From the IMG/VR virus record IMGVR_UViG_3300043426_000266, positions 62,001 through 126,000 of that record: a stretch of 64,000 bases of DNA; one strand, 5' to 3'. The notes under the pieces were generated by a model that saw only the letters and a list, made by a program, of their open reading frames with translations, ran no database searches and was not told the DNA's origin. Each line of letters starts with the position of its first letter. Positions within the stretch are counted from its first letter, which is position 1. The position numbers were made by a program, and so were the translations under genes. Below are positions 4,503-59,344 of this stretch, in pieces.

Positions 4503-4515
4503 TTCCAAATCCTTT

Positions 4516-4537
4516 CAAACATATATTATCAACATGT
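4516..4537 (+). promoter_or_regulatory. early promoter motif variant
   Basis: CAAACATATATTATCAACATGT matches the 22-nt consensus. Confidence 0.55.
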
Positions 4538-10130: not shown

Positions 10131-10163
10131 AAAATTAATCGTTTCATCGATTCCAAATCATTT

Positions 10164-10185
10164 CAGATACATATTACTTACATGA
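10164..10185 (+). promoter_or_regulatory. early promoter motif
   Basis: CAGATACATATTACTTACATGA. Confidence 0.7.
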
Positions 10186-10236: not shown

Positions 10237-10782
10237 ATGAAAAAAGTAGTCGCTAGTTTAATGTTATCAGGTCTAATGCTTACCTGCGCAACTTCCGTTT
10301 TTGCTGACTTTCCTAAAATTATCTTTGAAGGAAAAACAATTGGACCAACAGATACTCGCACCTCTTTAATTAAAAAATTTGGAAAACCAACTTCAGGTGA
10401 TAAGACATATAGTTATTGGGATAAACCAAATTTTTCCATGTCTGCTAGCTATGATCAATATGGTGTAAAAGAGTTTGGTATAGCTCAATTAAAGTCGGTT
10501 CCATCTAATGTTCAGTTAAAAGTGAATGAACAAACTATCACATTAGGTAAAGATACAATCAACTCAGCAGTAAAGAAATTTAAATACGGTTGTTTTGATA
10601 TTCTTGATACTAAGTTTAATAGTAATTATTCACTCACCATTGCTGCTGGAGAAGAAGGCGAAATGAATGTGGTGATGGATGCTGAGTATACTGGCAAAAA
10701 ATCAACATCTGCAAATAAACCAATCTTCGGCTTTAAATTTAATACAAACGAACCTGATAAAAGTGAAGGTTGTAATTATTAA
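10237..10782 (+). CDS. secreted/periplasmic protein with Sec signal peptide
   Basis: MKK + hydrophobic core + VFA|D signal peptidase I site; AAGGA RBS. Confidence 0.75.
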   Translation: MKKVVASLMLSGLMLTCATSVFADFPKIIFEGKTIGPTDTRTSLIKKFGKPTSGDKTYSYWDKPNFSMSASYDQYGVKEFGIAQLKSVPSNVQLKVNEQTITLGKDTINSAVKKFKYGCFDILDTKFNSNYSLTIAAGEEGEMNVVMDAEYTGKKSTSANKPIFGFKFNTNEPDKSEGCNY

Positions 10783-10863
10783 TTGAATCTGGCACGAAAA
10801 CTAGAATTGTATCATCCTAGTTTTCAGATTCACTCTTAAACTAATATATAATGTAGGTGCATA

Positions 10864-11079
10864 ATGAAGAAGTTCTCTACCTTTGGTTGGATGAACCAAG
10901 AGGCTCTAGCCTCAATGATTACCCCGGCTCAAATGGAATCATTAATTTCATGGATTGAATATCAGGGTTATGTTCCTGATGATCAAGCCATCAGAACTAA
11001 GAGATTAGACCAAAACACCATCATCCGTGCGTCGGAAGATGGTAAGAAGTTCAGACTACACCGACGCTTAGCTGCATAA
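10864..11079 (+). CDS. hypothetical small protein
   Basis: 71-aa ORF with AGGTG RBS. Confidence 0.7.
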   Translation: MKKFSTFGWMNQEALASMITPAQMESLISWIEYQGYVPDDQAIRTKRLDQNTIIRASEDGKKFRLHRRLAA

Positions 11080-11093: not shown

Positions 11094-11149
11094 AACCCCC
11101 TTAAGAGATTCTGGGTTAATGAATCCTTTGCCAGTCATGGTGAAAATAT
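11094..11149 (+). ncRNA. candidate structured RNA element (H-type pseudoknot + TGCC-N6-GGTGAAAATAT), copy 1
   Basis: AACCC/GGGTT and AGAGATTC/GAATCCTT pairings; ungapped alignment to the copy at 42158 with compensatory changes. Confidence 0.55.
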
Positions 11150-11185
11150 GAACAAACTAAACCTTCATTATCAAGAGTATTTAAA

Positions 11186-11311
11186 ATGAGTAATAAATTA
11201 ATTTTAATCATTACTACCTCAATAATCATTGTCCAAGCCATCGTTTTTGATGCCACCTGCTTTACCGATAATGGTAAGCGGATAGACAACTGTGAAATAA
11301 AGAGAGAATAA
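11186..11311 (+). CDS. 41-aa single-TM microprotein (not in ORF track)
   Basis: MSNKLILIITTSIIIVQAIVFDATCFTDNGKRIDNCEIKRE; CATTATCAAGAG leader; followed by a terminator. Confidence 0.55.
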   Translation: MSNKLILIITTSIIIVQAIVFDATCFTDNGKRIDNCEIKRE

Positions 11312-11336: not shown

Positions 11337-11368
11337 AAAAAGGGAGGGGTTGCACCCCCTCCCTTTTT
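11337..11368 (+). terminator. intrinsic terminator
   Basis: AAAAAGGGAGGGG...CCCCTCCCTTTTT. Confidence 0.8.
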
Positions 11369-11389
11369 GTTCAGCATGGAGTACTTTTT

Positions 11390-11617
11390 ATGATTCACCG
11401 TCATTCTGACCTAGGTCAGATACTCACATATAATGTGGGTAATATGGTAGAGGCTTACCAGATTGATGATCATGTAAAAATGGTAGAGATTAATGATGGG
11501 TATATTCAACCCCTTACATTTATAAGGGAGAAGATAGAACCCTACATTGAAAATTACCATTGGTATAAAAACGTCGGCAATAGGGTTTACTTTATCCTAA
11601 GGCATAAGACTAGTTAA
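11390..11617 (+). CDS. hypothetical small protein
   Basis: 75-aa ORF with GGAG RBS. Confidence 0.7.
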   Translation: MIHRHSDLGQILTYNVGNMVEAYQIDDHVKMVEINDGYIQPLTFIREKIEPYIENYHWYKNVGNRVYFILRHKTS

Positions 11618-16973: not shown

Positions 16974-17017
16974 TTAGAGTTCTCCATTGCAGGTCTCATA
17001 TTAATTTTAAAAATATA

Positions 17018-17039
17018 TAGATATATATTATTTACGTGA
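17018..17039 (+). promoter_or_regulatory. early promoter motif
   Basis: TAGATATATATTATTTACGTGA. Confidence 0.7.
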
Positions 17040-24207: not shown

Positions 24208-24408
24208 TTATACTCCAGCTTCTTTAAAGATACTATTTAGAATATGGGCACCGATTGAATCCGCAAGTGCTTCTTTGGCATCTTGGTTCTGTTCAACATA
24301 GACGTAAGATGGGTCAATGCGCATCATGACTTCTACACCCAATTCGATCATATTCCCTACGATACACGTGTTTGTCGCATGGACATTTTGTTGATTTAAA
24401 TCACTCAT
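24208..24408 (-). CDS. hypothetical small protein
   Basis: 66-aa ORF coupled to both neighbours. Confidence 0.7.
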   Translation of the reverse strand: MSDLNQQNVHATNTCIVGNMIELGVEVMMRIDPSYVYVEQNQDAKEALADSIGAHILNSIFKEAGV

Positions 24409-27400
24409 TGTTTATTACCTCTAAAAATATTGACCACCGACTTAGACCCGGCAACCATGAGATTGTTCGTTGTTCCAATTTTTTCTGGGGATAAAATCAC
24501 ACGGTTTTGAACGGATTGGTAACCAAAGAGTACGTCAATTTCTTGACCTGTTTCAGTTGTTACTTCCTCATCCCAAACTCGCCCAGTAACAGACTTCATC
24601 TGATGACCTAAAACAATCTTAGAACCCGTTCTCATTGGCTGAGAGGTCTCAATTGCTACTCGTATGATACAGCTGTTTGACTCCATAATTACGCCATTAA
24701 CGCGGAATCCAGAATCTACTGAACCATCTTGTCTAGGTTTACCTTGTTCTTTTGCTGCGTTTGATTTTTCCCGGTCTGTCTTCTCCACAATAGCACGTAA
24801 AGATTCCGTCATCTCATCAGGATCACCCGCATAAATCGCTTCTATAGAAACGACCTTTCCTTTCACTTCCGCTGAAGGAGAAATTGAACTTATATCTGCT
24901 AAGATTTCACGAGAGTCGTGAGTGAATAAACGTTCACTTGAGGCTGTTGATAATGTATCCAACAGGCGGCAAAGTTTTGTTTCATACTCCACAGTCTGTC
25001 CAACCTTAATTAGATCTTCAACCTCCTGATTGAAATAAACCAAAATGGTTCTTTCTTCAATAATTGAGGTTTCTAATTTACTCGTAAACTTTGCAGACAT
25101 TTCAGATGAGTCTTCGTAGGTTCCTGAATTCTCAGTGAATGCAGTTCTAGCAAGTAAACCCTGTTTATAACATAATTCTCCAGATACCCAGTTGTATTGA
25201 AAGAACAATGGATTGTAAGTAATTGGCGTGCCTTCTTTAAATTTATCCCCGACTTTTAATTCGGTAATCAATTCATGAGGAACAATTTTACCTTGCCATT
25301 TACCAGAACGTTTACCTAAAGGAAGTCTCTCTTCCTTACCGGTTTTATATTTTATTACGATTACATTTTTCGTAATCTCCTTGACTATCCCTTCTTCTCT
25401 TGCAACAAACGCATAGAGTTTAGAAACTCGGTATGGAATAACTGCCTCATACCCCGTTCTAACAGGAAGTAAAGTTAAACCCACGCAGCTTGTAGTACGG
25501 CTGTTTTGAATTGAGGAGAAGTTTCTCCGTTTAGGGTCATCATATTCAATCCCAGGCGACAAAAGCTCAGTTGTTGCTAGAAGCTTTGTTGCTGGGATAT
25601 CTTTTCGATCTTTCTTATCAACCACGTTTGGTAAACCCAAAACAGATTTAAAATTAGGGTCTGCTGTTAGGTACAAAACCGTTCCCGCATCACCATTATC
25701 AACTGTAGCGTCAGATAAGATCCCTACTGAATTCTCATGATATTTACGAGATTCAGAATTCAGAGTCCGACCATCACGACCACCTGCACCACGGTAAACC
25801 ACAATCTCTTGTTCTTTCAAACTATGGATAGGGTTGGAGTCTTCTACCGGCGCTACTGATTGGTCTTGTAAAACGCTCATCCAAACTGCTTGTGGATTTA
25901 ATTCAATTTTGGAGTTTGCTTTACTTGGTTTGTTGTTGTGTGTACGTGTTGCTTTTACAAGCTCGGCATATGCCATTCCAGCAAAACGCTCATACCCACG
26001 TAAACGAAACCCTACCTCGTCAGTTTGGTCGTCATGCTGATCAATCGTTAGTTTGTCTAACGCTGAAAATAACAGCCCAACAAAGTCAGTGGGTTCACTC
26101 ATCCCAACCAAAACATCTTTAGTAATTGGATCAACCCAAAGGTCTTTGTAGGTATCTAAACCTTTTAGGTAACGCGCTGAGATTTTAAGGTCTAATAAAA
26201 CCGCTCCGTAAACTTCCGGTTTATCAAACTGATAAACCGAGTATTGTTTGATCGTCTCCTGAATCTTTCTTAATCCCCCAAAGATCAACATTGAACGATA
26301 ATCATCACGATTAAATACTAATGTTTCATCGTTGAACTTAATTGCATACTCTTGATCTAAGAGTGCAATCCGAGTACCTTTTGGATGTCTTGTGAACTTG
26401 ACTTTTGAGGTCTCTAGTAAATTACCTAAACCCAGGTAATACCCTAACACAAATGCAAGAGGTAACTCTTCACCTAGGATATTAACTTCAGCCATGTCGA
26501 TAGGGGATTTGGAAATTGGAAACCCAAGGATAGATTCCATTGTACCAATATTAATAAGATCGTTCAAAACAGATGTGTTTGCTTCAAACAACGTACCATC
26601 TTCAGCCATGATAATAATCGAACTACGAGATTTCGACTTACCCACAACGATTTGATTCTTTTTAGCTTGCGCCATTGTGTTAACTAAATCAGCACCATAG
26701 ATCTGATTCATTTTTTCAACATTGAAGTTAAACTCATAATCCCCGATTCCAATCTTAGAAACAATTCGACTTAAAATCGTGAATTTCAAAGGCGCTTTAA
26801 TTTTATTATCGTAGACGTTAGAGAAGTTAATACTAACATCACTACGATCATTCCCCAATCCGATGAGTTGTTTCTCTAACCAACGTTCCTGAGAGTATGC
26901 GGTAAACTCAGAACGACGAACAAAGAATTTAGCAACATACGAGGTCAGCGCAACTTCACGATAATTAATCTTTCTAATAGGAAGGTCAAATCGCTGGGCT
27001 CTCATGCGGGATTTTACACCACCAGCCATGAAGTTACCATCCTCGTCAACAATTGGGATTTTAATCTTCACCGTTGACTCTTGACCTTCAAGTGGAACTA
27101 GTTTAAAGCTATGGATTTCAAATGCGTCAAATGCATTTTCGAAACGAGTCACTTTATAATCAGTAACACAAACCCCGTTGCGTTGAAGGTTAATACCAAT
27201 GGACATCATGTGTCTTGGTAAAATCTCGGTGGTATATTTCTTTGTTAAAAGATCTAACGAGGAACATAACATTGATTTATCTAAAACGCTTTTAGAATTA
27301 GACATGAGTTGAGTTTGGTCAGGTAAGAGTAAGTCTACTGGATTGATGTTAATAATCTCTGGAGCACTCTTATTTCCACCGTACGGATCTTTTATACTTT

Positions 27401-28802
27401 CCCACTTACTGCCAATCATTTTAAAACGACGAAGCTCTGCTGCTGTGTAAACACCCTCTAATGCAAGTTTATCAACCCTCTTATTGATTGATGAAGTGAG
27501 GTCAACTTCTTCAGCCTGGTAAGGCTTATAACCCACGGCTTTTAGAATTTCATTTTTTTCTTCCTCAACTTCAACATCTTCATTTAAAGATTCGAGTAAC
27601 GCAAGAGAATCATCTTCGTCGAGTTCATCAACTGCTTCTGAGTTAAAAATGTTTTCCTCAGATGCCTTAATGGTTTGAAGTGTTGCGTTTCGGTCTAACC
27701 CAATCTTTAAAAGTTGTTCGACAGTGTTTACTGTGTTAGAAGAGGAGTTTCGATAAGCCTCTTCCGTTTGTTTGAATCGTTCTTGGCGTTGCCCAATACT
27801 GGAACTACCCAAATCGGATGGGCCAGTATCAGCGCTAAGATCATTATCGTCTTCGTAAGCATCTTCATCAGCATTGTCTTCCATTTGTTCTTGGGTTTCT
27901 TCGGTTGTTTCAATATTTAAATCAACTGAAGTATCACCCATTGTGATTTTCATTGTACCTAACAGAAACCATTTTCTAACATCAACAATGGTGAGTTCTT
28001 GAGTTTTTTGTGTTTTGCCAACTTCTGGAATAATCCAACTCTTAAGCAATCCTAGGTTAACAACAAAGTAGTTTAAACCAAAATAAAAAATAACGTTTAA
28101 ACGTTCTAACGCTTTTAAGTCTTGTGGAATAACTGATTCGGTGCTTCCCGTTAACCAAGAATAGAACTCAGTATAAAGGAACCGCTCTTCAGTTTTAAAC
28201 TTTTTCCAATTGACTTCTTTATTTTCGGTTTCCCATTTCATCAACTGCGAACGAGAAGGCACAATTGAAGGTAGGCGAATTGCAACAAAGTGATGTCGCT
28301 GGTCATTCACCTCTGTTGTTGCAATGTCTTGAAAAACTGATTTCCAGTAATTTCGTAAACGATCATATTCACTTAAGACAGTTTTAACATAAAAGAATTC
28401 TGCGCCAACTAGAGTATGATTCTTTACAAGCAGGTTACTGATGATTCCCACTTTTGAAGTGTCAACAAAGCCTTTAACAAACCCTGGGTGCAACCGATGA
28501 TAATCTTTAATCATCATCGGTTTTTGAAGTGTATCTCTGGTGACCCGAAAAGCGTTAATATCCACTGAATCAACATAACTGGTCTGGTGGAATAAAACAA
28601 CTTTTGCAGCTTTGTCTAAATTTGCTAAGAAACTATTATTCTCAGCAATCCCAACGTTAACCACATCTGGGTCTTGATCTGTGAAATGAAAATATGAATT
28701 CTTTGGAAATTCAAAATTCGCAATATTGTTTAGAATCGGATTTTTTAATTGCTTTGGGAATCTAACTCCAGTCTGTTTATAAAACTTAGGGTAAAGAATC
28801 AT
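24405..28802 (-). CDS. rpoB: virion RNA polymerase beta subunit, N-terminal/main part (phiKZ gp178-like)
   Basis: GDAGT, DDPKRRNFSSIQ, VRTGYE, YEDS, GHQMKS beta-like motifs; ATG 28802 (MILYPKF). Confidence 0.88.
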   Translation of the reverse strand: MILYPKFYKQTGVRFPKQLKNPILNNIANFEFPKNSYFHFTDQDPDVVNVGIAENNSFLANLDKAAKVVLFHQTSYVDSVDINAFRVTRDTLQKPMMIKDYHRLHPGFVKGFVDTSKVGIISNLLVKNHTLVGAEFFYVKTVLSEYDRLRNYWKSVFQDIATTEVNDQRHHFVAIRLPSIVPSRSQLMKWETENKEVNWKKFKTEERFLYTEFYSWLTGSTESVIPQDLKALERLNVIFYFGLNYFVVNLGLLKSWIIPEVGKTQKTQELTIVDVRKWFLLGTMKITMGDTSVDLNIETTEETQEQMEDNADEDAYEDDNDLSADTGPSDLGSSSIGQRQERFKQTEEAYRNSSSNTVNTVEQLLKIGLDRNATLQTIKASEENIFNSEAVDELDEDDSLALLESLNEDVEVEEEKNEILKAVGYKPYQAEEVDLTSSINKRVDKLALEGVYTAAELRRFKMIGSKWESIKDPYGGNKSAPEIININPVDLLLPDQTQLMSNSKSVLDKSMLCSSLDLLTKKYTTEILPRHMMSIGINLQRNGVCVTDYKVTRFENAFDAFEIHSFKLVPLEGQESTVKIKIPIVDEDGNFMAGGVKSRMRAQRFDLPIRKINYREVALTSYVAKFFVRRSEFTAYSQERWLEKQLIGLGNDRSDVSINFSNVYDNKIKAPLKFTILSRIVSKIGIGDYEFNFNVEKMNQIYGADLVNTMAQAKKNQIVVGKSKSRSSIIIMAEDGTLFEANTSVLNDLINIGTMESILGFPISKSPIDMAEVNILGEELPLAFVLGYYLGLGNLLETSKVKFTRHPKGTRIALLDQEYAIKFNDETLVFNRDDYRSMLIFGGLRKIQETIKQYSVYQFDKPEVYGAVLLDLKISARYLKGLDTYKDLWVDPITKDVLVGMSEPTDFVGLLFSALDKLTIDQHDDQTDEVGFRLRGYERFAGMAYAELVKATRTHNNKPSKANSKIELNPQAVWMSVLQDQSVAPVEDSNPIHSLKEQEIVVYRGAGGRDGRTLNSESRKYHENSVGILSDATVDNGDAGTVLYLTADPNFKSVLGLPNVVDKKDRKDIPATKLLATTELLSPGIEYDDPKRRNFSSIQNSRTTSCVGLTLLPVRTGYEAVIPYRVSKLYAFVAREEGIVKEITKNVIVIKYKTGKEERLPLGKRSGKWQGKIVPHELITELKVGDKFKEGTPITYNPLFFQYNWVSGELCYKQGLLARTAFTENSGTYEDSSEMSAKFTSKLETSIIEERTILVYFNQEVEDLIKVGQTVEYETKLCRLLDTLSTASSERLFTHDSREILADISSISPSAEVKGKVVSIEAIYAGDPDEMTESLRAIVEKTDREKSNAAKEQGKPRQDGSVDSGFRVNGVIMESNSCIIRVAIETSQPMRTGSKIVLGHQMKSVTGRVWDEEVTTETGQEIDVLFGYQSVQNRVILSPEKIGTTNNLMVAGSKSVVNIFRGNKQ

Positions 28803-30457
28803 TCTAGATCTCCGGATAATGACCATAATACTCGCGCAAGCACTTCTGCTGAGAATGGATCATTTAACAATTTACCAGAAGAATTTAAATAACTGGCTTC
28901 TGAGTTAATATATTTTTCTACTGCTGCAATCCCTTCATTACTTAGAACAGGGTTGTAGTTACACATATCTCCGTCAAAATCCCCAGCGATGCCAACGAGT
29001 CTTGTTTGATGCACCGCCATTGAGTCAAACCAATTATCATCATCGGTTCTTGGGTAGTGGTGTGCAACAAACTCCATGGGTGTAAATGTCTCATCTAACT
29101 CAATTAACTCCAAATCTTTATTCGTTGTTAAGACATGTGGATAGGTCGGGTAGATTGAGCGGTACCCGTTAATCGGATAACGAGTTACAGTCGCTGGGTA
29201 TTTTGGAAATAAACGATACCCATGGATATACATCAATTCGGCGTAGGTGACTGGATAGACGTTCTTAATGTCAATATCAATTCGACCCTCTACCTTTTCC
29301 CCTTCGATCGCAAGATCATTGATGTCATTAATTAATCTAAAATGTTTCTCATCTTTATAAACCAATCCTAGATAATAACCACCCAACATAATGTGGGTGT
29401 TTCTTAAATGGTTATCAGATAAAGAATCAATTGTTTTAGATAAACCCGTTGGTGTTAACCAACGGTCAATTAACTTGGGTTTAACTGTAACTTCTTCGCG
29501 TGTGAGTGTTTTAGGATTAATTAGATTTACTTTACCTGGGATTGGACTTTGTAGGTTTTGTAAGTAACCGTTGATAAGCTGATGAATTAACACGGGCGCG
29601 TAGACCGCAGCTGCTTGGTATAAACCAATTGCTGTCTCATTAAACTTTAATGATTTAGGATCATCAATAAACCGTGCGGTATTCTCATTAGACGTGATAA
29701 CGTTTCTTGAGCCATATTTGATTTTACGTGTTGCAAACTTACGACGCATAAACGATTTCTTTAAACGACCCACTAAGGTAGATAAATATTCGTAGAGCTC
29801 ACACCATGTGTTTTGTAACGCCATTCGAGGGCGATCGTTTAAGGCGGAATTCAAATCCCCAGAGTTGGGTAGAGAGTTTGAGATGCTTAGCAATTTAACA
29901 TAAAGATCATTTATCTCATGTTTAGTTACTTCACCTTCGTCATTCATCTCGATATCACGAAGACCAGCTGGGATAACCATTACTCGTTTACCTAATGCGG
30001 TTCCGAGTTTTTTAAACTTAAGGATATCGTCAATAGCTTCACGTCGAATGTCAGAGTCGTTTTTAACAAATACGATTTTTTCCCAATGAGTTAAGAAGAA
30101 ATGAAATCCAGTTTCCCCAGTGAGGTTTGTTGCTTTTACAAAGTCCTTTTCTTCATCACTCCAAACCGCATAGGTGGAACCAGACATAATTCCTTTATAT
30201 AGTTGCTTCACGGAACAAAGTAGGGCAAAAATCTTTGGATGGAAAACATTAATTCTAAGGTCAAGGTAAGAATGTCTTTCATCTCTATCCGAAGTACCAA
30301 TCTTGCCAAAGATGGACGTTGAAAAAAGACCTTCTTCATGAAAGTCTTTTGACATCCCCTGAAACGTATCAAGTGATGTCACGGGTTTAATATATTTAAA
30401 TCGATCGGTATTGGTATCCATAATACTGATATCGAATTTTACCATTTTTTCAGACAT
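28799..30457 (-). CDS. rpoC: virion RNA polymerase beta' subunit, catalytic part (phiKZ gp180-like)
   Basis: EGLFSTSIFG, PAGLRD, catalytic AGDFDGD. Confidence 0.92.
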   Translation of the reverse strand: MSEKMVKFDISIMDTNTDRFKYIKPVTSLDTFQGMSKDFHEEGLFSTSIFGKIGTSDRDERHSYLDLRINVFHPKIFALLCSVKQLYKGIMSGSTYAVWSDEEKDFVKATNLTGETGFHFFLTHWEKIVFVKNDSDIRREAIDDILKFKKLGTALGKRVMVIPAGLRDIEMNDEGEVTKHEINDLYVKLLSISNSLPNSGDLNSALNDRPRMALQNTWCELYEYLSTLVGRLKKSFMRRKFATRKIKYGSRNVITSNENTARFIDDPKSLKFNETAIGLYQAAAVYAPVLIHQLINGYLQNLQSPIPGKVNLINPKTLTREEVTVKPKLIDRWLTPTGLSKTIDSLSDNHLRNTHIMLGGYYLGLVYKDEKHFRLINDINDLAIEGEKVEGRIDIDIKNVYPVTYAELMYIHGYRLFPKYPATVTRYPINGYRSIYPTYPHVLTTNKDLELIELDETFTPMEFVAHHYPRTDDDNWFDSMAVHQTRLVGIAGDFDGDMCNYNPVLSNEGIAAVEKYINSEASYLNSSGKLLNDPFSAEVLARVLWSLSGDLE

Positions 30458-30510: not shown

Positions 30511-33500
30511 ATGGCTAAACGTGATATAGATGACTTCGAGGAACTCGACCTCGGACTCGATGATGACATGGGGTACGAGGACAATAATCGGCCTTCCAGT
30601 GATCGTAAAGCATCCATTTTTTCAAGAAGTAAAAACTACGCTAAAAGCCATTATAAAGCAAAATTTGAAGATCGTAATGAACGTAAACGTTTATTAAAAC
30701 AAGCAATCCCTGGGTCTTATGGTAGCGCGGTAGACTTAGCGTTTGACATGAAAGACGATTATGATTCAATCAAATATGAAGTCTCTAAAGAATGGCAAAA
30801 AAGCAAAGGTCCTTTTAAAAAGCTTTTAAAATCTCAAGAGGGAACTTTACGCGCCTTACGTTTAAAGAAACTTGCCGATTGGGCAAATGAGGAAGATCGG
30901 GGTCGTTACGCTGAAGAAGCAGTAGATCAAGACGATGCGTTAACTGCGAACCTCATGGGTGATTTCACCAAATATAAAAACTCTCCGGCTGAAAAAGAGA
31001 AAGCTGCAACAGATAAAGTTGATCAAAAAGAAAAAGAAAGTGATCAAGAGTTTAAGTCAAAAACATTATCGGCTACTTTAAAAGGAACTGCAAATTTAAC
31101 TAGTATCCTTAAAGAGTTACAAAATCAAACCTCTTACCAAGACCAAATTACCTTTCAATATCAAAGAAAGAATTTGGAATTTAATATTCGTAACTTTATC
31201 GAGTCCAAGAAACAGACCGAGTTATTACGGACATATAAAGAAGAGGCTATTTCAGAGCTCAAAGAGATTCATAAAAATACCGCCCTACCTGACGCGGTTA
31301 AGATTAACCAGTCAGAATTGGCTGGACAAATCTTTAAAGAAAAAATGCTTGGAAATGTTGCGTCTTATTTCGATGGTAAGATGTCAACGATGCGCCGTAA
31401 AATTGTTTCTAGAGTCAAGGATCGTTTACTTGAATTAACTCGAGACATGGGTACAAACATCGAGGGGATGTTGGAGGCCGCAAGTAGTCAACAAGAATCT
31501 GGGGGCGGCTCTCTTCTCGGTATGTTCGGGCAGATGTTTGCCGACTCTAAGTTAGACAAACCTTACAACTATGTTACTGGTAAAGCGACCAAATATATTC
31601 GTAATAAGTTAGGTGCGAATACTAAAATTAATAAATTTGGTAAAGGGTTAAATTCTCTTATTGCCAATGCAGGTACCCTTGGTAATGAAGCTCTAATTAC
31701 CGGTAAGACAGGGAATAAACTCCTTGATGGTTTATCAAGCTTTCTAGGTTTAAATCAGGCGGCTACGACCCGATCAACTCGTTTACGAAATTCGTTATCC
31801 GATAACTTAGATACCGCTACCTATATGGACGTTAAGTTCAAACAAACCGTAGAGCGGGTTATTCCAGGTTGGTTAAGTTTAATTCACAAAGAAACTTATC
31901 TAACTCGAATTGGTAGCAACAGCGATAAAGACTATAAAAAGAAATCGTGGGATTGGGATAAAGAAGATTTCGATAACGATCAGAATGTAAAAGATCGCGC
32001 ATTTACCAAAGTCTTTAAAAAGGAAAACATTGAACAGTTTTCAATGGCAATGGAAAATGTATTAAGAGTCTATGACCCAATTGCCTTTTTAACTTTAGAT
32101 GCTCGAAATGAATTAAAGGACTGGATCTATAATAAAATCCAGTCCTCTCGTTCACCCTCGTTCTACAACCTTATGCTTGAAATTAATACTTTTAAAAATA
32201 AGGCTACTCGAGCACAACTTATTCAATTGGCAAACTTTGCCGCTGACATCCACGAAGAGGATTTAGAGTACGCTGAGGAAGGTTTACTAAGTGAAGGTAA
32301 ACTTATCATGCGTCGCCCTAAATACGCTGAGTGGGCTAAAAAAGCAAAACCTTATATTGATGAATTAGCGTCACGTCCTTTGTTTGACATCAACGAATTG
32401 ATGCGCATTGCCAATACTGAGCAAGGCAAAGTCTTTGAGGAGATGGGGTTAGTTACCCGTGATGGTTCTGGTAACCTAGACATGTCAGTTGACTACGAGA
32501 AGAAAATCGTACGGAAAATGACAAGTATGGATTACAAACAAATCGCGAAACTAAAAGAAGGGGAAGGTCAATCTTATCGCAATAACCGAGGTCAACAAGA
32601 AACACGTAACCGCATGGAACTCGATAATGAGAACATGCAGGATACAATTGATGACTGGTTAAATTCGGATGCGCGTATTGATGATAAGACGTATGCAATT
32701 TTACAAACGCTTCTTAACAATGATACGTTAGACGCTCGTTCTAAAAAAGCGAATGAGAAGAAGATCAAGAACATTCTCTCTTCTTTGATTTTCCAAACCA
32801 ATGACGAGATCAGAGAAGGGAAGAAATCTGGGCGTATCGCCACACGCGCTGCAGGTGGTATTATTCCTTCATTTGCTAAAGGCGGGAAGAACCGTAAGAA
32901 AAAAGGTAAAAAGTCTTACCTTGAAGCTTACAAGGGCGGTAGCACGGGGAATGCTCCGGTTGATGAAGGTCAACTAGCAATTGTTCATGGTCAAGAGTTC
33001 GTTACTGACGCAACCACGACTGAGAATAATGAAACCCTCCTTGAACTCATGAACAAGTTCAAAGCACCTGTCTTCCTACCAGATGGTAAAGTTAACCCTG
33101 TCTACTATAAGGCAATGGGGTACGAAGACGAGGAGGAGTTCCGTAAGGATCAATCCCAACAACTTCGTTTGGCTAAGAAGAAACTCCGTGCAGATAAGTT
33201 CTCTGCTGGAGCACGTACAGGTTCTGCTTGGGTTGCAAATAAGGTTAAAGGTTTAGAAGGTCGAGACAACTCTAAGACCAAAGAAAAGATTAAAGCTGCT
33301 GCTTCTGAAATCACTGAAGAAGGTAAACGCATTTTTGATGAAGCTTACAAAGCTTTAAATGGAATGAGTGAACAACAACTTCAATCTGTCTACTCTAAAT
33401 TGATGACTGCTACAGATAGCTCGATTTTCAATGCGTCAGAAAACGCGTTGATTGCAAGTGATGCATCTACCCACAAGAAAGTTTTAACGGTAATTAAAGC

Positions 33501-36500
33501 GAAACTTCGTGAAGAGAACCGTACTAAGATTGTGGCGGAGTTAGCCAAAGCGTTAGGATCACAGTTCTACAAAAAAGCTAAGGATCGTTTAAAGACATTC
33601 TTAAATGGTGGAACTGAAGATACAGCAACCACAGATAACTTAAAGCAGGTTTATAACTTTGGTAAAAACAAGGTTACTGGTGCTTACGGTGAAATTAAAA
33701 ACTTTGCTGGAGAGCAGTTTAACAAGACTGCTTTAAAAGGGCGTTATGACCAAGCCAAAGGTTTGATGCAAAAAGCGTGGAAAGAACTTGCGATTGACAT
33801 CTACCTGGTCGTGAATCCTGCATTGGTTCGTTTAAGTGCTGCTGGGTTTGAATCTGGTATGTACATTGACAAAGCCACTGGTCGTGTACTTGAATCTCAT
33901 CATGACATTAATGGTGAAGTTGTCAATACTCAAGGTAACATTGTTTTAACCGATGAAGAGTTAGGGAAAGGTTTACTGGATAAAGAAGGTAATCGAATTA
34001 ATCCTAGTTCTTTAGCACGTTATCGCAATATTGCTCGTAACAAAGCCGTTGAAGCGTATAACAAGTATGCCAAGAAACATGTTGATAAATACCTTAACAA
34101 AGGTGCAGATCTTCTTTTAACTGCTGCAGAACGTTGGCAGCGTATGTTTAAAGAAACTGTGATTGACGTCTATGTCACTGGGAAGGGTGATAAACCTATA
34201 TTGACCGCAGTTGGTTTTAGAGCAGGTGAATATCTCAGCACTGTGAGTAAGAAAGTACTTACGGATTACTTGGACATTGATGGTCCGGTAATGACGAAGA
34301 ATGGTCAATACCTTTTGCTTGCAGAAGACTTGGGTAACTTAATCGATAAAGATGGGAAACCAATTAAACCAACGAAGCTTGGTGGGATTGGACAACGTCT
34401 ATTCGGTATTGCTTCTGAAGCTTTGGGGTTAGGTCGAATCAAAACCTTCGGTAAGAAGATGTTTGATAAGGCTAAAGCGTTCTCTGCGAAGAAGATGGCT
34501 GAGAACTTCAGCAAAGCTGGAGCAGATGCTGTTGATGTTTACTTGGCAGACAAAATGGATACTCCTACGCTTTACGCAAAAGAGTTCCGCGAGGGTTTAT
34601 ACCTTGATCAGGCAACTGGTGAAAAACTTGCCAACCACTACATGATTAAAGGTCCAGTCATTAAAACATTGGACAATGGTTCTGTTGAAGTGGTGTTAAC
34701 TGCTGAAGATCTTCAAAAAGGTTTTGTTGATGCAGAAGGTAAACCGTTACCAGTTGTTAAAGTAGATTTCCTCCGTGGTTCATTCTTTAAAGGAATGTTG
34801 GGGAATAGACTGGATGGCGCTAAAGGACGAGTTAAAAACTTCTTGAACCGTTTCAAGAAAGAGAAAGCTGAGGAAGTAACTGAAGAAGCTCCTACCCAAA
34901 CAGGCAGCAACAAGGTGATCTACTATAAAGACCCACTTGATGGTGGATTGCTTCCTGCATTTGATTTAGATGCGATTAAGAACTGGGAACTTTACCAGGT
35001 TAATCTTGATACTGATAATCCAGATGCAACAGTGTCTCGTATCTCTGACCTCTCTGAGATCCAAAAAGGTTTTACTGTATACCGTCTGAAAACTGGCAAG
35101 TCAGCCCCTGCCGATAAACCAATGACCGTTGCTTTATTGAACAGTTTAGGTTTTATTGCTGTACGGAGTTCAGTGAACCAAGGTGTTTGGTTTGATGAGA
35201 AAGGGAAGAAGTTCAAAGCTGAGAAGAAGAAACCTGAACAACAAGGTGGACAAAGTAAGTTTTCGAAACTGAAAGGTAAACTTGGTTCTAAGCTTGGTGG
35301 ATTAAAAGACAAGTTGAAAGGTAAATTCACTGATGAAGAAGGTAACTTCCGAATTGGAAGTTGGCAGTGGAAACGCAAGAAGAAAGAGGAGGATGGTTGG
35401 TTTGGTCGTCTTGGTTCTGCGTTAGGTCTTGGGAAGAAGAAGGGGGATGAAAATCCTGCTAAACCTAGTTGGCTAAAAACCATGTTTGGTTGGTTTAGTA
35501 AAAAATTCATCTTCATGGGATTAGCCGCTGCTGGATTAGTTAAAGCCTTAGGTGCTAAAATTAGTTTAGGTTCAATGGCTGCTGGTTTATTAGCTGTTAA
35601 AGGAATTAGCTGGGCTCTTAAAAAGTCATTGACCGGTTTGGTGTTTAAACCACTAATGAACTTGATTCCATGGCTTGGTACTAAAATCATGGGCGCTGTA
35701 CGCGGTCGTGGTATGATGGGTAACGGCATAGGTGGTCTTGGTAAAGTTGCTCGTATTGGTGGTGCTGCTTTAGGCGCACATGCTATCTACAAGGGGCTAA
35801 AAGGCGAAGAGCAGTTTGATGAGAATGGTGATCCAATCGTAGATTCGGAAGGCAATGCTGTAGTTAAGAAAGACTACATGGGTGCTGCCTTGGGTGCCGT
35901 TGGTGTTGCTTCTATGATCCCTGGTGTTGGTGGCATGGCAATGTCCGCTGGGGCTGCCTTATTAACTAACCCAGTTGGTTGGGCTATTCTTGGTGGGGTT
36001 GCGGTTGGCGCTGCGAGTTATTGGCTAGGTAAGAAAGCATTAGGTTGGTGGAAAAAAGGGAACGCTTTAGAAGAAAGTCCTTTATCTGCTTTCCGTATGA
36101 TTCAATATGGTTTTAGCCCAATTGATGATAAAACAATGCAACCAATTCTTCAGTTAGAAGGATACTTATCTGGAATGCTTGTTAGTGGTAATGATGGTAT
36201 TAATATCAGTAATCAAGTTGACCCTAATGGGGTATTTGGTATTTTTGGTTTGAAATATGGAACTGGAGATGCTGAACGTAATAAGTCTTTCTTAGCGTGG
36301 TTCCTGGGTCGTTTTAAACCGGTTTACTTATCGTACGTCAAACAGATGAACGCGATTAAGAAAACTTACAAACTTGATGGCATTGATACTAGTGTTACTG
36401 CTGCTGATCGTCTGTCTATCTTAGAGAATGTACACTTTAAGAACCAGACTGACATGAACCCGTATAACATTCCAGTATCACCTTTTGAAGATCCGGATGA

Positions 36501-39396
36501 AACTGATTACGACTTTGATGATGTTTGTGATAAGTACGATGATGTTAAATCAATTCTTGGAGAACTTGTTCCTGCAAGTGATAAATCTAAGGAGGAAGCA
36601 AAAGCATCTGAGGAGAAGAAAGAAGGTGGTTTGCTTGATACGGCGAAGAAGGCATTAATGTTTGCTAGTCCACTAGGCGCTGCTGTCATGGGGCTTAAAT
36701 GGACAGCGAAGAAGATTGGTGATGTTTTTAACGTTAGTATTGGTGGAATGCAAAAATCCTTTTCTACAATGATGGATAAAGCATTTAAATCTTTAAGTGA
36801 AAAATGGGAAGGAGTGAAAGGTTGGGCGAAAAATGCATGGAACTCTATAACAAACTTAGATGCCGGTGGCATGGCAGATGCTGCTAAGGACGTCGTGATG
36901 AATGCCACTCCAGTTGGCTTAGCAGCACAGGCAGCTGGAGCAGTTGGGTCAGCAGTTGGGTCAGCAGTTGGTGGCGCTGGAGATGTAATCTCCAAGGGGT
37001 GGAGAAGTTTAACTGGTAAGACTGGTGAAATGCAAAAAGCAGTTTATGAGTCGTTCATCCGAGCTGGACTAACACCTAACCAAGCAAAAGCAATTACTGC
37101 TGAAGTTGGGCGAGAAAACGACTACAACCCGAGTACTATATTTGGTACCCACGTTGACCCTGCCTCCGGGGGTAAAGCGATTAATAACATCGGGATGATT
37201 TCTTGGAATGGTCCACGAGCTGAGAAATTAGCTGCGCTACTTAGAAATCAGGGGTTGTTAGACGCGAGTGGGAAGATGGTCCAAGGTCAAGCTGCTCTAG
37301 ATGTTCAGACTAAGTTTGCTGTTTCTGAAATGAAAGGACCTTATGCTAAAGGGTTAACTAATTTCTTAAACAATCCTAATGGTGATCCTGAGAGTTTTGC
37401 TCAAGAGTTGGGTAAAAAGTATATCGTTTGGGCTTATGGTCAGACTAAACTTAAGAATGGTAAAAGTTTTGATTGGAAAGCTCATGACGATAAACGTCGA
37501 AAATATCTACAGTCTATTAGTGCTTCCGTAGGCACATCACCGGCGGGTTCAACCGCAGCTGGAGCAATACCACCAACCATCGCTAAGCCGGGGATTATGT
37601 CTGGTGCAGCAACAGGTGTGGTGGCTGGAGCAAATGCTGCGGTAACCGGTAATGCTGGTAGTGTGAAAAATTCATCAGTACCGATGATTGGTATTGGTGG
37701 AACTGATCCTACTAAAGCAGCGGGGGCAAAAGCGCAAGCCATCTCTAAATCCACCCCAATAAATGCTAAGGATGCCCAGTGGGACTTGGATAAAATCGCT
37801 GAATTTGTTAGTAAAAAAACCAAAGGTACTTTTAAACCTGGTTTAAAAATCGGACAATGTGCCTTGTATGTTCGACAAGCTCTGCAAGCTGGAGATTTAC
37901 AGAAACAAATTCCTGCTGGTTTAGGCGATGCGTGGCAACTTGGTGCTAAATTAAAAACCATGGGCTGGGCTGTAGTTGGCAATATTAACACTATTAAGCC
38001 ATTAAAGGGTGATATTGGTTTCTTTGATAAAGGTTCTTATATGTCTGGAGGTAAACCTACACCGTATGGTCACGTATGTATCTTTACTGGAAGCGCTTGG
38101 ATTTCTGATTTTACTCAAGCCTCAATTTACCCAGGTAGCCAAATGGCGAAACAAGGAGTTAAACATGAAATTCTGCGTGCTGTAAAATCTATCAGCAATG
38201 GTAAACCGGCAATGGTAAACGTAGGTAGCGAAACTCAACCTAGTCAAAATCCTGAAGCCATGGGGACTACATCTGCACCACAGAAACCAGCTACCAACAC
38301 AGGTAATGCTTCTGCTCCTGCGGCTGGTGTGGTAGCTGGGGCTAAAGCAAGCGTTGCAGCTAAAGGCTCCTCAAGTGTACCGATGATTGGTATCGGAGGA
38401 AGTGATCCGACTAAAGCTTCAACATCTGCCACAGGCGCTGTTAAGGTAGCAGCCGCTGCTGCTGGTGGTGATCTAAAAGTCCTACTGGCTAAGGCCACTC
38501 CTGAACTTGTTGCTGCTGGCAAATTACACCATAGGCTTAAAGATAAAAAAGTTACATTGGCTGGAATGAATGAGACGTTTATGACTTTATTCTGGGCGAT
38601 GTTGGGTGAAGCTAGACAGAAGGGTTTAGGTGTTGTTCAGATTAATGAAGGTGTTCGTACATTGGCAGAGCAGAGAAGACTGTACGCGTTGTTTTGTGCT
38701 GGTAAAGGTCCGTTGGCCGCTAAGCCTGGTACGTCTCGTCATGGGTTCGGACAAGCAATGGATATCAATACTGTAAATGCTGATGAACTTGATAAAAAAG
38801 GCTTATTGGCAAAATGGGGTTTCAGTCGCCCTCTCATGAAGAGACTTGCAAGTGGGAAGTTGACAGAGACTTGGCACATCGAGAACAAATTTGTTAAACG
38901 GGATGGATGCCCTGCTCCTCAGATTGAAAAAGCCAAGGAAACCACTAGCGGCGCCATGGCGCCGACTGGAACCCCTTCCGCTAACACGTCAACCGCTAAC
39001 GCGCCAGCCGCTAACGCGCCAGCAGCCAACACGGGTAATGCTTCTGTTAACGCCGTGGTTAATGCTGCTGGCTATGGAATGACAAACACTGTTTCTAATC
39101 AACAACAAACCGACTCAATTAGTTCTTCGTCAGCTAATGATATTTTAACAAGACAGTTGGAGGTACAAACTCAGATTAGAAATGCGGTTGTTGAGTTAAA
39201 AGACTTTATTGTTAAACCCGTTTCTGCAGAAGAACGACAACGTTTAGAGGAGATGAAAAAACCTGCTGATATGCAATCTATTGGAGAGCAAATCGGCAAG
39301 TCAATTACTGAGGCAATTGGAAACAAGTTGTCTGGTAATAAAAGTAATTTAGATCTTCAAAAACCAAGGGCTCCAATTTCAGTGAGTAAGTTTTAA
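30511..39396 (+). CDS. tail tape-measure-like lysin (phiKZ gp181-like) with phage-tail lysozyme, CHAP-like and M15 peptidase domains
   Basis: 2961 aa, divergent from vRNAP beta'. Lysozyme-like AITAEVGRE...GMISW; CHAP-like GQCALYV...GHVCIF; M15 SRHGFGQAMD...ETWH. Confidence 0.85.
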   Translation: MAKRDIDDFEELDLGLDDDMGYEDNNRPSSDRKASIFSRSKNYAKSHYKAKFEDRNERKRLLKQAIPGSYGSAVDLAFDMKDDYDSIKYEVSKEWQKSKGPFKKLLKSQEGTLRALRLKKLADWANEEDRGRYAEEAVDQDDALTANLMGDFTKYKNSPAEKEKAATDKVDQKEKESDQEFKSKTLSATLKGTANLTSILKELQNQTSYQDQITFQYQRKNLEFNIRNFIESKKQTELLRTYKEEAISELKEIHKNTALPDAVKINQSELAGQIFKEKMLGNVASYFDGKMSTMRRKIVSRVKDRLLELTRDMGTNIEGMLEAASSQQESGGGSLLGMFGQMFADSKLDKPYNYVTGKATKYIRNKLGANTKINKFGKGLNSLIANAGTLGNEALITGKTGNKLLDGLSSFLGLNQAATTRSTRLRNSLSDNLDTATYMDVKFKQTVERVIPGWLSLIHKETYLTRIGSNSDKDYKKKSWDWDKEDFDNDQNVKDRAFTKVFKKENIEQFSMAMENVLRVYDPIAFLTLDARNELKDWIYNKIQSSRSPSFYNLMLEINTFKNKATRAQLIQLANFAADIHEEDLEYAEEGLLSEGKLIMRRPKYAEWAKKAKPYIDELASRPLFDINELMRIANTEQGKVFEEMGLVTRDGSGNLDMSVDYEKKIVRKMTSMDYKQIAKLKEGEGQSYRNNRGQQETRNRMELDNENMQDTIDDWLNSDARIDDKTYAILQTLLNNDTLDARSKKANEKKIKNILSSLIFQTNDEIREGKKSGRIATRAAGGIIPSFAKGGKNRKKKGKKSYLEAYKGGSTGNAPVDEGQLAIVHGQEFVTDATTTENNETLLELMNKFKAPVFLPDGKVNPVYYKAMGYEDEEEFRKDQSQQLRLAKKKLRADKFSAGARTGSAWVANKVKGLEGRDNSKTKEKIKAAASEITEEGKRIFDEAYKALNGMSEQQLQSVYSKLMTATDSSIFNASENALIASDASTHKKVLTVIKAKLREENRTKIVAELAKALGSQFYKKAKDRLKTFLNGGTEDTATTDNLKQVYNFGKNKVTGAYGEIKNFAGEQFNKTALKGRYDQAKGLMQKAWKELAIDIYLVVNPALVRLSAAGFESGMYIDKATGRVLESHHDINGEVVNTQGNIVLTDEELGKGLLDKEGNRINPSSLARYRNIARNKAVEAYNKYAKKHVDKYLNKGADLLLTAAERWQRMFKETVIDVYVTGKGDKPILTAVGFRAGEYLSTVSKKVLTDYLDIDGPVMTKNGQYLLLAEDLGNLIDKDGKPIKPTKLGGIGQRLFGIASEALGLGRIKTFGKKMFDKAKAFSAKKMAENFSKAGADAVDVYLADKMDTPTLYAKEFREGLYLDQATGEKLANHYMIKGPVIKTLDNGSVEVVLTAEDLQKGFVDAEGKPLPVVKVDFLRGSFFKGMLGNRLDGAKGRVKNFLNRFKKEKAEEVTEEAPTQTGSNKVIYYKDPLDGGLLPAFDLDAIKNWELYQVNLDTDNPDATVSRISDLSEIQKGFTVYRLKTGKSAPADKPMTVALLNSLGFIAVRSSVNQGVWFDEKGKKFKAEKKKPEQQGGQSKFSKLKGKLGSKLGGLKDKLKGKFTDEEGNFRIGSWQWKRKKKEEDGWFGRLGSALGLGKKKGDENPAKPSWLKTMFGWFSKKFIFMGLAAAGLVKALGAKISLGSMAAGLLAVKGISWALKKSLTGLVFKPLMNLIPWLGTKIMGAVRGRGMMGNGIGGLGKVARIGGAALGAHAIYKGLKGEEQFDENGDPIVDSEGNAVVKKDYMGAALGAVGVASMIPGVGGMAMSAGAALLTNPVGWAILGGVAVGAASYWLGKKALGWWKKGNALEESPLSAFRMIQYGFSPIDDKTMQPILQLEGYLSGMLVSGNDGINISNQVDPNGVFGIFGLKYGTGDAERNKSFLAWFLGRFKPVYLSYVKQMNAIKKTYKLDGIDTSVTAADRLSILENVHFKNQTDMNPYNIPVSPFEDPDETDYDFDDVCDKYDDVKSILGELVPASDKSKEEAKASEEKKEGGLLDTAKKALMFASPLGAAVMGLKWTAKKIGDVFNVSIGGMQKSFSTMMDKAFKSLSEKWEGVKGWAKNAWNSITNLDAGGMADAAKDVVMNATPVGLAAQAAGAVGSAVGSAVGGAGDVISKGWRSLTGKTGEMQKAVYESFIRAGLTPNQAKAITAEVGRENDYNPSTIFGTHVDPASGGKAINNIGMISWNGPRAEKLAALLRNQGLLDASGKMVQGQAALDVQTKFAVSEMKGPYAKGLTNFLNNPNGDPESFAQELGKKYIVWAYGQTKLKNGKSFDWKAHDDKRRKYLQSISASVGTSPAGSTAAGAIPPTIAKPGIMSGAATGVVAGANAAVTGNAGSVKNSSVPMIGIGGTDPTKAAGAKAQAISKSTPINAKDAQWDLDKIAEFVSKKTKGTFKPGLKIGQCALYVRQALQAGDLQKQIPAGLGDAWQLGAKLKTMGWAVVGNINTIKPLKGDIGFFDKGSYMSGGKPTPYGHVCIFTGSAWISDFTQASIYPGSQMAKQGVKHEILRAVKSISNGKPAMVNVGSETQPSQNPEAMGTTSAPQKPATNTGNASAPAAGVVAGAKASVAAKGSSSVPMIGIGGSDPTKASTSATGAVKVAAAAAGGDLKVLLAKATPELVAAGKLHHRLKDKKVTLAGMNETFMTLFWAMLGEARQKGLGVVQINEGVRTLAEQRRLYALFCAGKGPLAAKPGTSRHGFGQAMDINTVNADELDKKGLLAKWGFSRPLMKRLASGKLTETWHIENKFVKRDGCPAPQIEKAKETTSGAMAPTGTPSANTSTANAPAANAPAANTGNASVNAVVNAAGYGMTNTVSNQQQTDSISSSSANDILTRQLEVQTQIRNAVVELKDFIVKPVSAEERQRLEEMKKPADMQSIGEQIGKSITEAIGNKLSGNKSNLDLQKPRAPISVSKF
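33793..34760 (+). repeat. three internal protein repeats at exact 123-aa periodicity in the lysin
   Basis: IDIYL (33793), IDVYV (34162) and VDVYL (34531) are each 369 nt apart, with a shared G.Y...T....DI.G.V....L..E.L..G..D..G.. pattern. Confidence 0.75.
36940..36975 (+). repeat. 12-nt tandem repeat (AVGS) in linker
   Basis: GCAGTTGGGTCA x2 + GCAGTTGGTGGC. Confidence 0.7.
38978..39035 (+). repeat. 15-nt tandem repeat (ANAPA/ANTST) in linker
   Basis: CCGCTAACACGTCAA CCGCTAACGCGCCAG CCGCTAACGCGCCAG CAGCCAACACGGG. Confidence 0.7.
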
Positions 39397-41724: not shown

Positions 41725-41745
41725 TATGTTGATTCCATTTTATTT

Positions 41746-41767
41746 CAGATATATATTACTTACATGA
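41746..41767 (+). promoter_or_regulatory. early promoter motif
   Basis: CAGATATATATTACTTACATGA. Confidence 0.75.
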
Positions 41768-41811
41768 ATAAATCCATTTATTAAACTTTTATTTTCAAAA
41801 AGGAAATTACC

Positions 41812-42144
41812 ATGAATACTGTTTCTACCACTGTTGACACTGCTGAAACTATTGCTAAAATTCAAGCCAATATAGATGCAATCGCTGCGTCTAACTTTGG
41901 TATTCATTTTTGCTGCAAAACCGCAGCGACAGCGATTAAGTTTGCTACACACGTTATGAACGATGTTGGTAATCCGTTTTATGGTGACAAAGTAGAAGTC
42001 AACAACCGTGAGGTTGTTATCTGTCCACCTAATAGTAACACATCATACAACGTGTGCAAACTAGCAGAAATATTCTGCACCGAGTTTTCTAATCAGTTTG
42101 GGATTGATATTATCGACTTCACTGAAACTGTTCATTACAACTAA
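41812..42144 (+). CDS. hypothetical early protein
   Basis: 110 aa with AAGGA RBS. Confidence 0.75.
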   Translation: MNTVSTTVDTAETIAKIQANIDAIAASNFGIHFCCKTAATAIKFATHVMNDVGNPFYGDKVEVNNREVVICPPNSNTSYNVCKLAEIFCTEFSNQFGIDIIDFTETVHYN

Positions 42145-42157
42145 TGGATAATTTCAA

Positions 42158-42213
42158 AACCCGTATTGATAGTTTGGGGTTATAAAACTATCTGCCTGCT
42201 AAGGTGAAAATAT
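42158..42213 (+). ncRNA. candidate structured RNA element (H-type pseudoknot + TGCC-N6-GGTGAAAATAT), copy 2
   Basis: AACCC/GGGTT and GATAGTTT/AAACTATC pairings; same spacing as the copy at 11094. Confidence 0.55.
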
Positions 42214-42249
42214 ATAACTTCTTAATCAAAACCATTGGAGATAATACCA

Positions 42250-42354
42250 TGAACGTAATAATTGAAATTTCAGAAAGCAAAGTCAAAGAGCTTGATAAAA
42301 TTAGTTTTGAAGAACTTGTAAAGCAGGTTCTTCAGAACGTAGAAATAAAGTAAG
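42250..42354 (+). CDS. 34-aa microprotein (not in ORF track)
   Basis: MNVIIEISESKVKELDKISFEELVKQVLQNVEIK; GGAG RBS. Confidence 0.55.
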
Positions 42355-42394
42355 GGCAACCCCTACTTTATTTTTTGTTTAATCTAAATAATTA

Positions 42395-42416
42395 CAAATA
42401 TAAATTATATACATGA
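42395..42416 (+). promoter_or_regulatory. early promoter motif variant
   Basis: CAAATATAAATTATATACATGA. Confidence 0.6.
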
Positions 42417-45442: not shown

Positions 45443-45454
45443 TGTAAAGATTTT

Positions 45455-45476
45455 CAGATCTACACTATCTACGTGA
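45455..45476 (+). promoter_or_regulatory. early promoter motif variant
   Basis: CAGATCTACACTATCTACGTGA. Confidence 0.55.
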
Positions 45477-58641: not shown

Positions 58642-58730
58642 GATTTTAGCAGCTAAGTTACCTTTTATTTAATTAAAGCTTAATACGACGCTTACAAACG
58701 CATTTAGAGATAGATAAATGTAATAACTTA

Positions 58731-58804
58731 CAGACATACATTATTTACATGTAAATCAAATCATTTTAGATTAAATTTATTTCAGATATACACTATCTAA
58801 TTGA
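58731..58804 (+). promoter_or_regulatory. two tandem early promoter motifs
   Basis: CAGACATACATTATTTACATGT (58731) and CAGATATACACTATCTAATTGA (58783). Confidence 0.6.
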
Positions 58805-59284: not shown

Positions 59285-59322
59285 TGTAGATTTGATCAAA
59301 TCATTTTAGATTAAAATATTTT

Positions 59323-59344
59323 TAGATATATATTATTTAAATGA
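59323..59344 (+). promoter_or_regulatory. early promoter motif
   Basis: TAGATATATATTATTTAAATGA. Confidence 0.7.

Follow-up and report, generated by a model that had tools for sequence, protein, structure and literature searches.

A 58-base element that sits twice between presumed early genes of an uncultured phiKZ-like jumbo phage belongs to an undescribed family of structured RNAs, predicted to fold into two back-to-back pseudoknots, which distantly related jumbo phages keep through compensating mutations. Across 16 sequences, 10 base pairs show double changes, no Rfam family matches, and the element always lies on the coding strand. Its possible functions are inferred only, and our preferred reading, a translation gate, is tentative.

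Genomic setting of the two copies

The window, i.e. the whole 64,000-nt stretch analysed here, is identical where compared (both element loci and the 749-aa gene) to the 205-kb IMG/VR contig 3300043426_000266. Its phiKZ-like character is shown by two adjacent, separately encoded RNA polymerase beta-type subunit genes (24405-28826 and 28799-30457, - strand), a phiKZ gp29-type tail sheath (47581-49962), a DUF7193 protein and a large terminase. No close relative among cultured phages was found by megablast, and the best protein identity is about 37%. The DNA is found in freshwater and wastewater runs. No tRNA or tmRNA was detected.

A sequence-only reading had described two gapless 56-nt non-coding segments 31 kb apart, sharing an 8-position helix with compensatory swaps, a pseudoknot between its loop and an upstream AACCC, a mini-hairpin and an invariant tail, each just upstream of a tiny ORF. 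We confirm this observation. The gapped pattern AACCC-N14-GGGTT-N11-TGCC-N6-GGTGAAAATAT hits only 11094-11149 and 42158-42213 in the window, both on the + strand, with no hit in 100 dinucleotide shuffles. Between the copies, the helix shows four double swaps, and copy A has one G.T wobble and one A.C mismatch, as had been described. This two-copy covariation is not a chance effect: fourteen further copies in other contigs keep the same helices with new compensatory changes. No weaker copies were found in the window by pattern searches with mismatches or by the covariance model. Four points of the description need correction: (i) the element runs 2 nt further, to 11151 and 42215; (ii) the supposedly invariant GAAAATAT is not a passive tail, since its last bases pair with the hairpin loop; (iii) the fifth pair of AACCC/GGGTT exists only in the window-type copies; (iv) the link to a tiny ORF is not a family feature. 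The parts of the element and its neighbourhood are as follows.

11094..11151 (+), element copy A, the whole predicted double pseudoknot (58 nt); covariance model R1 scores 72.7 bits, E 1e-13
11094..11098 (+), copy A helix 1, 5' strand (AACCC), proposed to pair with 11113-11117 (GGGTT) to form pseudoknot A
11104..11111 (+), copy A helix 2, 5' arm, pairing with 11121-11128
11121..11128 (+), copy A helix 2, 3' arm
11129..11142 (+), copy A helix 3 hairpin (UGCC+A / U+GGUG, 4-nt loop), whose 3' arm is the Shine-Dalgarno-like GGUG
11143..11151 (+), copy A A-rich linker AAAAUA (11143-11148), then 11149-11151, which pair with loop bases 11135-11137 to form pseudoknot B; the AUG is at 11148-11150
42158..42215 (+), element copy B (R1 score 87.3 bits), with helix 1 42158-42162/42177-42181, helix 2 42168-42175/42185-42192, helix 3 42193-42197/42202-42206, linker 42207-42212 and pseudoknot B 42199-42201/42213-42215
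10864..11079 (+), upstream gene of copy A (71 aa, no family match), whose stop codon lies 14 nt before the element
11186..11311 (+), tiny ORF after copy A (41 aa, hydrophobic N-terminus), followed by a terminator at about 11337-11369
41812..42144 (+), upstream gene of copy B (110 aa), whose stop codon lies 13 nt before the element
42249..42353 (+), tiny ORF after copy B (34 aa), followed by a terminator-like hairpin at about 42347-42376
10161..10184 (+), early-promoter-like motif heading the operon that contains copy A
41743..41766 (+), early-promoter-like motif heading the operon that contains copy B

Both copies share one layout: an early-promoter-like motif, one or two small genes, the element, a tiny ORF and a terminator. 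The two upstream genes are not paralogous, and none of the flanking proteins matches a family. The promoter-like motifs belong to a family of at least 11 AT-rich motifs in the window with consensus TTWCAGATATATATTAYTTACATGA (726-749, 4513-4536, 10161-10184, 17015-17038, 41743-41766, 42392-42415, 45452-45476, 58728-58751, 58780-58804, 59320-59343 and 62569-62592). They usually sit just after terminators, and each is followed by a conserved leader (AACYTTYATTATCRAAGGA) ending in the Shine-Dalgarno site. By analogy with the AT-rich motifs upstream of early operons in RNA-polymerase-encoding jumbo phages (PMC7598289), we infer that these are probably early promoters together with a shared 5' leader or translation enhancer; the designation of the operons as early rests only on this motif. 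Near copy A, the spacer between genes 10237-10782 and 10864-11079 (10783-10863) has a 9-bp hairpin (GAAAACTAG...CTAGTTTTC) that runs into a degenerate copy of the motif, which a sigma-70 scan also scores (TTCAGA-18-TATAAT). A 75-aa ORF (11390-11617) starts 21 nt after the terminator at 11337-11369 with no promoter motif between them, so that its expression would need terminator read-through or an unrecognised promoter.

Homologous copies in other phages

Pattern scans and synteny walks found 14 further copies in other freshwater and wastewater phage contigs (loci from other contigs carry L numbers below). A viral scan gave one copy in a second jumbo contig of 232 kb (L006), and a metagenome scan gave L020/L031, L023, L026 (a 286-kb contig), L027/L030 and L029. 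Walking from the 99-aa gene downstream of the L023 and L026 copies gave L114, L115/L116, L117/L118, L128/L132 and L129/L130, and also one orthologous locus with no element, L131. Walking from the 110-aa gene upstream of copy B gave L133, L134 and L135. All four orthologue loci fetched for that gene (L027, L133-L135; 61-89% aa identity) carry the element. L133 also carries an orthologue of at least 2,569 aa (cut by the locus end) of a 2,961-aa window ORF (30511-39396) that has an N-terminal tail-fibre-like region, a tail lysozyme and a VanY-type peptidase domain, plus internal DNA repeats (37678/38377, 38287/39019, 36726/37008). The 99-aa gene has no homologue in the window or in IMG/VR, and IMG/VR holds the element family in only two contigs. 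The phage carrying L114 has tail tube and sheath proteins only 30-41% identical to those of the window phage.

A covariance model built from eight sequences scores all true copies at 37-95 bits and everything else at 21 bits or less. Ten metagenome loci (L016-L019, L021, L022, L024, L025, L028, L032) match the spaced pattern by a conserved ...GTGCC-N6-GGTGAAAATCGATCAAGAAATGCGACCG... core (for example L018 1681-1748), but lack helix 2, have a shorter spacer, score only 14-20 bits and are followed by (GACA)n or (CA)n microsatellites. We rejected them as an unrelated multi-copy repeat, which looks eukaryotic and has no Rfam match. L127 (6553-6620, - strand, of IMGVR_UViG_643677422_000001, 7,048 bp, 63% GC) shares CTGCCTGCTA-GGTGAAAATATG with copy B but lacks helix 2 (21 bits); this is probably a chance match, and the acidic proteins of the contig suggest a haloarchaeal virus. 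Viral hits to CCCGTATTG-N8-GGGGTTA were chance matches with none of the element's 3' part. A strict-pattern scan of 185,579 bacterial and archaeal species genomes gave 78 hits, about the number expected by chance; the three with an upstream CCC are single copies in unrelated MAGs.

Covariation and predicted fold

On the 16-row alignment, 94.6% of cells are paired, against 82.5 +/- 1.1% in shuffles (0 of 500 reach the observed value) and 34-49% when the partners are slid. Helix 2 (8 bp) has double changes at 6 of 8 pairs and 98% of cells paired. In helix 3 (UGCC-N / N'-GGUG) the closing pair is AU in 8 sequences and UA in 7, one C-to-U change keeps a wobble, and the U.G and G.U pairs are invariant. 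RNAalifold recovers helices 2 and 3 without guidance. Helix 4, which the sequence-only reading had not seen, pairs loop positions 3-5 of hairpin 3 with the three bases that follow GGUG-AAAAUA, overlapping the 'AUG' after GGUGAAAAUA. All three of its pairs covary, with pair types GC6/CG4/UA2/AU1, CG10/UA5/AU1 and AU13/CG1/GC1, and 92% of cells are paired. Helix 1 (ACCC/GGGU), the pseudoknot originally proposed, is sterically plausible (5-nt loop 1, 3-4 nt loop 3) but is invariant in 16 of 16 sequences, so that covariation gives no evidence for it; the fifth pair is present in 6 of 16.

The predicted result is two H-type pseudoknots with no linker between them: PK-A, in which ACCC pairs with the GGGU in the loop of helix 2, and PK-B, a 5-bp hairpin whose loop pairs beyond the A-rich linker. 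An alternative pairing of GUAUU with AAUAU of the tail was rejected, being broken in copy A, L128 and L117 and showing only one-sided changes. Single-sequence folding energies are unremarkable on both strands (z from -0.8 to +0.5), which is uninformative for a pseudoknot.

Searches with Rfam 15 models gave no hit at gathering score in the whole window, nothing relevant at E<=10 around copy A or copy B, and nothing at E<=0.1 in 14 homologous loci. The sequence-only reading had inferred a functional cis-encoded RNA with covariation and without a recognised Rfam family, and had asked for further copies with covariation in related phages; these exist, and its interpretation is supported.

RNA or DNA

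The rival offered with that reading was a DNA promoter with its start site at AAAATAT. Several features lend it some support: 10 of 16 copies carry TATG, the phiKZ late-promoter core (PMC7598289); the bases after it (ATGAAYAAA) resemble those after the window's early-promoter motif (CATGAAYAAA); and the distance to the next start codon (36-47 nt) equals that of early 5' leaders. The latter two features remain unexplained and may reflect recombination at shared microhomology. However, TATG, strictly required at phiKZ late start sites (PMC7598289), is replaced in 6 of 16 copies by TATA, TAGT or TACG together with compensating changes in the hairpin loop. All 16 copies lie on the strand of the flanking ORFs, the pairings are non-nested and so cannot form as a DNA cruciform, and the two invariant G.U pairs exist only on the + strand. 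There are only two copies per 205 kb and none before structural genes, and five copies would drive only a 30-45 nt RNA into a terminator. The runs holding this phage are Logan contigs, and those labelled RNA-Seq behave like DNA, such that the RNA reading rests on sequence alone.

Conservation and mobility

In the 99-aa-gene series the element is 86-96% identical (66-72% in pairs with the divergent L117), while the third codon positions of the neighbouring gene are 56-72% identical (46-53% with L117) and the spacer 44-97%; the element is thus better conserved than the third codon positions and, in nearly all pairs, than the spacer. In this series the upstream genes differ while the element and the downstream gene stay together. 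In the copy-B series the element follows the same upstream gene in L133 (75% aa identity, with a 35-aa ORF kept) and in L027, L134 and L135, where the tiny ORF is precisely deleted and the element abuts the terminator. L020 has, about 40-60 nt upstream of a full copy (oriented strand), a remnant of the element's 5' half (GTCGTATTGTAGTTCG) and a 12-bp hairpin, suggesting a partial duplication or an insertion within an older copy. In wastewater relatives, contigs break at the two early-promoter motifs flanking the copy B cassette (110-aa gene, element, tiny ORF; about 41770-42367) and continue into unrelated sequence. The element is therefore a portable module in a recombining accessory region.

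Possible functions

Any model must explain about 35 invariant positions of 58, a stop codon 8-17 nt before ACCC in 15 of 16 copies although the upstream genes are unrelated, a next start codon 36-47 nt downstream in 10 of 11 lineages that have a downstream gene (68 nt in L128), survival in front of a terminator with no downstream gene, and only 1-2 copies per genome. What the analysis establishes is that the family exists, that helices 2, 3 and 4 are supported, and that strand and position are consistent; helix 1, the stacking of the two pseudoknots and every functional model, including ligand or protein binding, self-cleavage and transcription start, are inferences.

We tentatively favour a translational gate at a cistron junction of polycistronic messages of small accessory (probably early) genes. 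PK-B is built from a Shine-Dalgarno-like GGUGA and, in 10 of 16 copies, an AUG; GGUG followed by 4-5 nt and then AUG is the arrangement used by real genes of this phage, for example at 10864 and at the start of the 28799-30457 gene. In this view the folded RNA would hide a ribosome entry site, and unfolding, triggered by a ribosome finishing the upstream gene or by a bound protein or ligand, would load ribosomes about 40 nt ahead of the next gene. Several observations do not fit easily. The AUG is replaced by AUA, ACG or AGU in 6 of 16 copies (copy B reads AUA-UAA). The short ORF starting at this AUG reaches the next start codon in 8 of 11 lineages, but not significantly (each has 0.12-0.67 probability in shuffles), and we rejected a leader peptide on this ground. 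Four related copies (L027, L030, L134, L135) and L020 have no downstream ORF, only a terminator 10-12 nt away; L131 lacks the element; and the downstream genes are unrelated, so that no common regulatory logic is visible.

Only slightly less favoured, and likewise doubtful, is a binding site for a conserved protein or an aptamer for a small ligand, in which a phage or host factor would recognise the invariant loops, the RNA acting in cis as an operator or riboswitch, or in trans as a decoy, for example against an RNA-directed host defence. The invariant positions include unpaired ones (ACCC, GUAUU, GGGGUUA, AAAAUA) across phages with 30-41% identical tail proteins, the gene context varies, the element lies in cassettes between early promoters that differ among wastewater strains, and its persistence before a terminator resembles sRNA architecture. 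However, no candidate partner was found, no protein gene is consistently linked to the element, the bacterial genome scan indicates that it does not closely copy a host RNA, and PK-B has no loop between its helices in which a preQ1-type ligand pocket could sit.

An mRNA-fate element is unlikely but possible: a compact, triplex-braced double pseudoknot could block exonucleases or RNase E, or define a processing boundary, and so stabilise the upstream or downstream cistron. The position after a stop codon, intercistronic or in a 3'-UTR and in 5 copies directly before a terminator, would suit this, as would the geometry of mechanically strong H-type pseudoknots with an A-rich loop, such as BWYV-type knots. 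However, ordinary terminator hairpins already follow these units, a simple roadblock would not need this much loop conservation, and in the 99-aa-gene series the element tracks the downstream gene, not the upstream one.

A new class of small self-cleaving ribozyme is less likely still. The size, pseudoknot-rich fold, many invariant unpaired bases, sporadic intergenic distribution and few copies per genome resemble twister, pistol and hatchet, but no Rfam ribozyme model hits even at E=10, no cleavage-site motif is recognisable, and new ribozyme classes are rare among candidate motifs. A special class of DNA promoter, with its start at TATG as in phiKZ late promoters and possibly recognised as a hairpin as in N4, is very unlikely given the evidence above.

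More speculatively, and improbably on present evidence, the element could be an autonomous functional RNA rather than a cis regulator, either a new class of self-cleaving ribozyme or an RNA decoy made early in infection to neutralise an RNA-directed host defence. If this phage builds a phiKZ-type nucleus, RNA-directed defences would be the kind that can still reach it.

Comparison with known systems

Translational H-type pseudoknot riboswitches (preQ1-I, SAM-II) share a compact knot with a 5-bp stem, a 3-bp second stem and a 6-nt A-rich third loop, a Shine-Dalgarno-like sequence locked inside, and a location just upstream of coding sequence. PK-B agrees with preQ1-I in its 5-bp P1, A-rich tail and 3-4 bp P2 formed with the end of the tail, the minor-groove triplex being presumed only by analogy. 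It differs in having 0 nt between helix 4 and the 3' arm of helix 3, where preQ1-I has the loop carrying the ligand-pairing C. There is also no covariance-model match, a second pseudoknot is fused upstream, and the downstream genes are unrelated to each other and to any metabolite pathway; preQ1-I is associated with queuosine genes, whereas the flanking genes here have no family match. The pseudoknot operators of E. coli rpsO (S15), the alpha operon (S4) and T4 gene 32 likewise include or abut the ribosome binding site and are read by a protein to set translation, but they sit before the gene of the protein that binds them, whereas here no gene is constantly linked, and there is no sequence similarity.

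Luteovirus-type (BWYV) frameshift pseudoknots have nearly the dimensions of PK-B (5 bp, 1-2 nt, 3 bp, 6-7 nt A-rich loop; 1 nt and 6 nt in PK-B). However, the element lies after the stop codon rather than inside an ORF, its spacing from the stop varies from 8 to 17 nt instead of a fixed 5-9 nt, no slippery heptamer is shared, and in-frame stops follow within 5-20 codons. The small self-cleaving ribozymes found in phages (twister, pistol, hatchet, HDV-like) resemble it in size, pseudoknots, conserved unpaired bases and scattered intergenic occurrence, but none of their models matches, nor do those of hammerhead and twister-sister, and the pseudoknots here are tandem, not nested. PeSL mobile regulatory cassettes of T4-type phages are also conserved non-coding modules flanking small, rapidly exchanged early genes, and the replacement of the copy B cassette recalls PeSL-mediated shuffling; a PeSL, however, is a sigma-70 promoter plus a simple stem-loop, while this element is a predicted double pseudoknot with covariation and no promoter consensus. 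The phiKZ late promoter and N4 hairpin promoters share TATG (in most copies) and hairpins next to a possible start site, but here the TATG covaries with an RNA loop, two copies occur per genome and G.U pairs are present.

The element is not an intrinsic terminator: helix 2 is A/U-rich and followed by UGCC, helix 3 is followed by AAAAUA, and a terminator scan calls neither. Nor does it fit a type III toxin-antitoxin antitoxin RNA (ToxI-like), which has tandem repeats directly upstream of an endoribonuclease toxin gene, since the copies are single and 31 kb apart with neighbours of 34-110 aa that match no family. ACCC-N13-GGGGU-UAUAAAAC bears a resemblance to type VI CRISPR repeats, and a repeat mimic (RNA anti-CRISPR) would be nearly identical to a host CRISPR repeat; there was no Rfam CRISPR-DR hit, the species-genome hits of the 3'-part pattern look like chance, with no identified host whose repeats could be compared, and the resemblance is partly contradicted by the covariation of the 'AAAC' segment as a helix arm.

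Significance

Literature searches by topic and by sequence strings found no description of this element. Structured RNAs of nucleus-forming and related jumbo phages are almost unexplored, and the transcriptome papers we read report only promoters, terminators and a few putative sRNAs (PMC11512511, PMC7598289). The family described here has strong covariation support, a predicted fold of two tandem pseudoknots and extreme conservation across very divergent phages, which implies a conserved partner or an activity of its own, and at 58 nt it is small enough for direct tests. It sits in the fast-changing, presumed early accessory cassettes where host-takeover and anti-defence functions tend to be found. 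If it gates translation, it would be a compact, portable control part; if it is a ribozyme or a decoy, it would be a new class.
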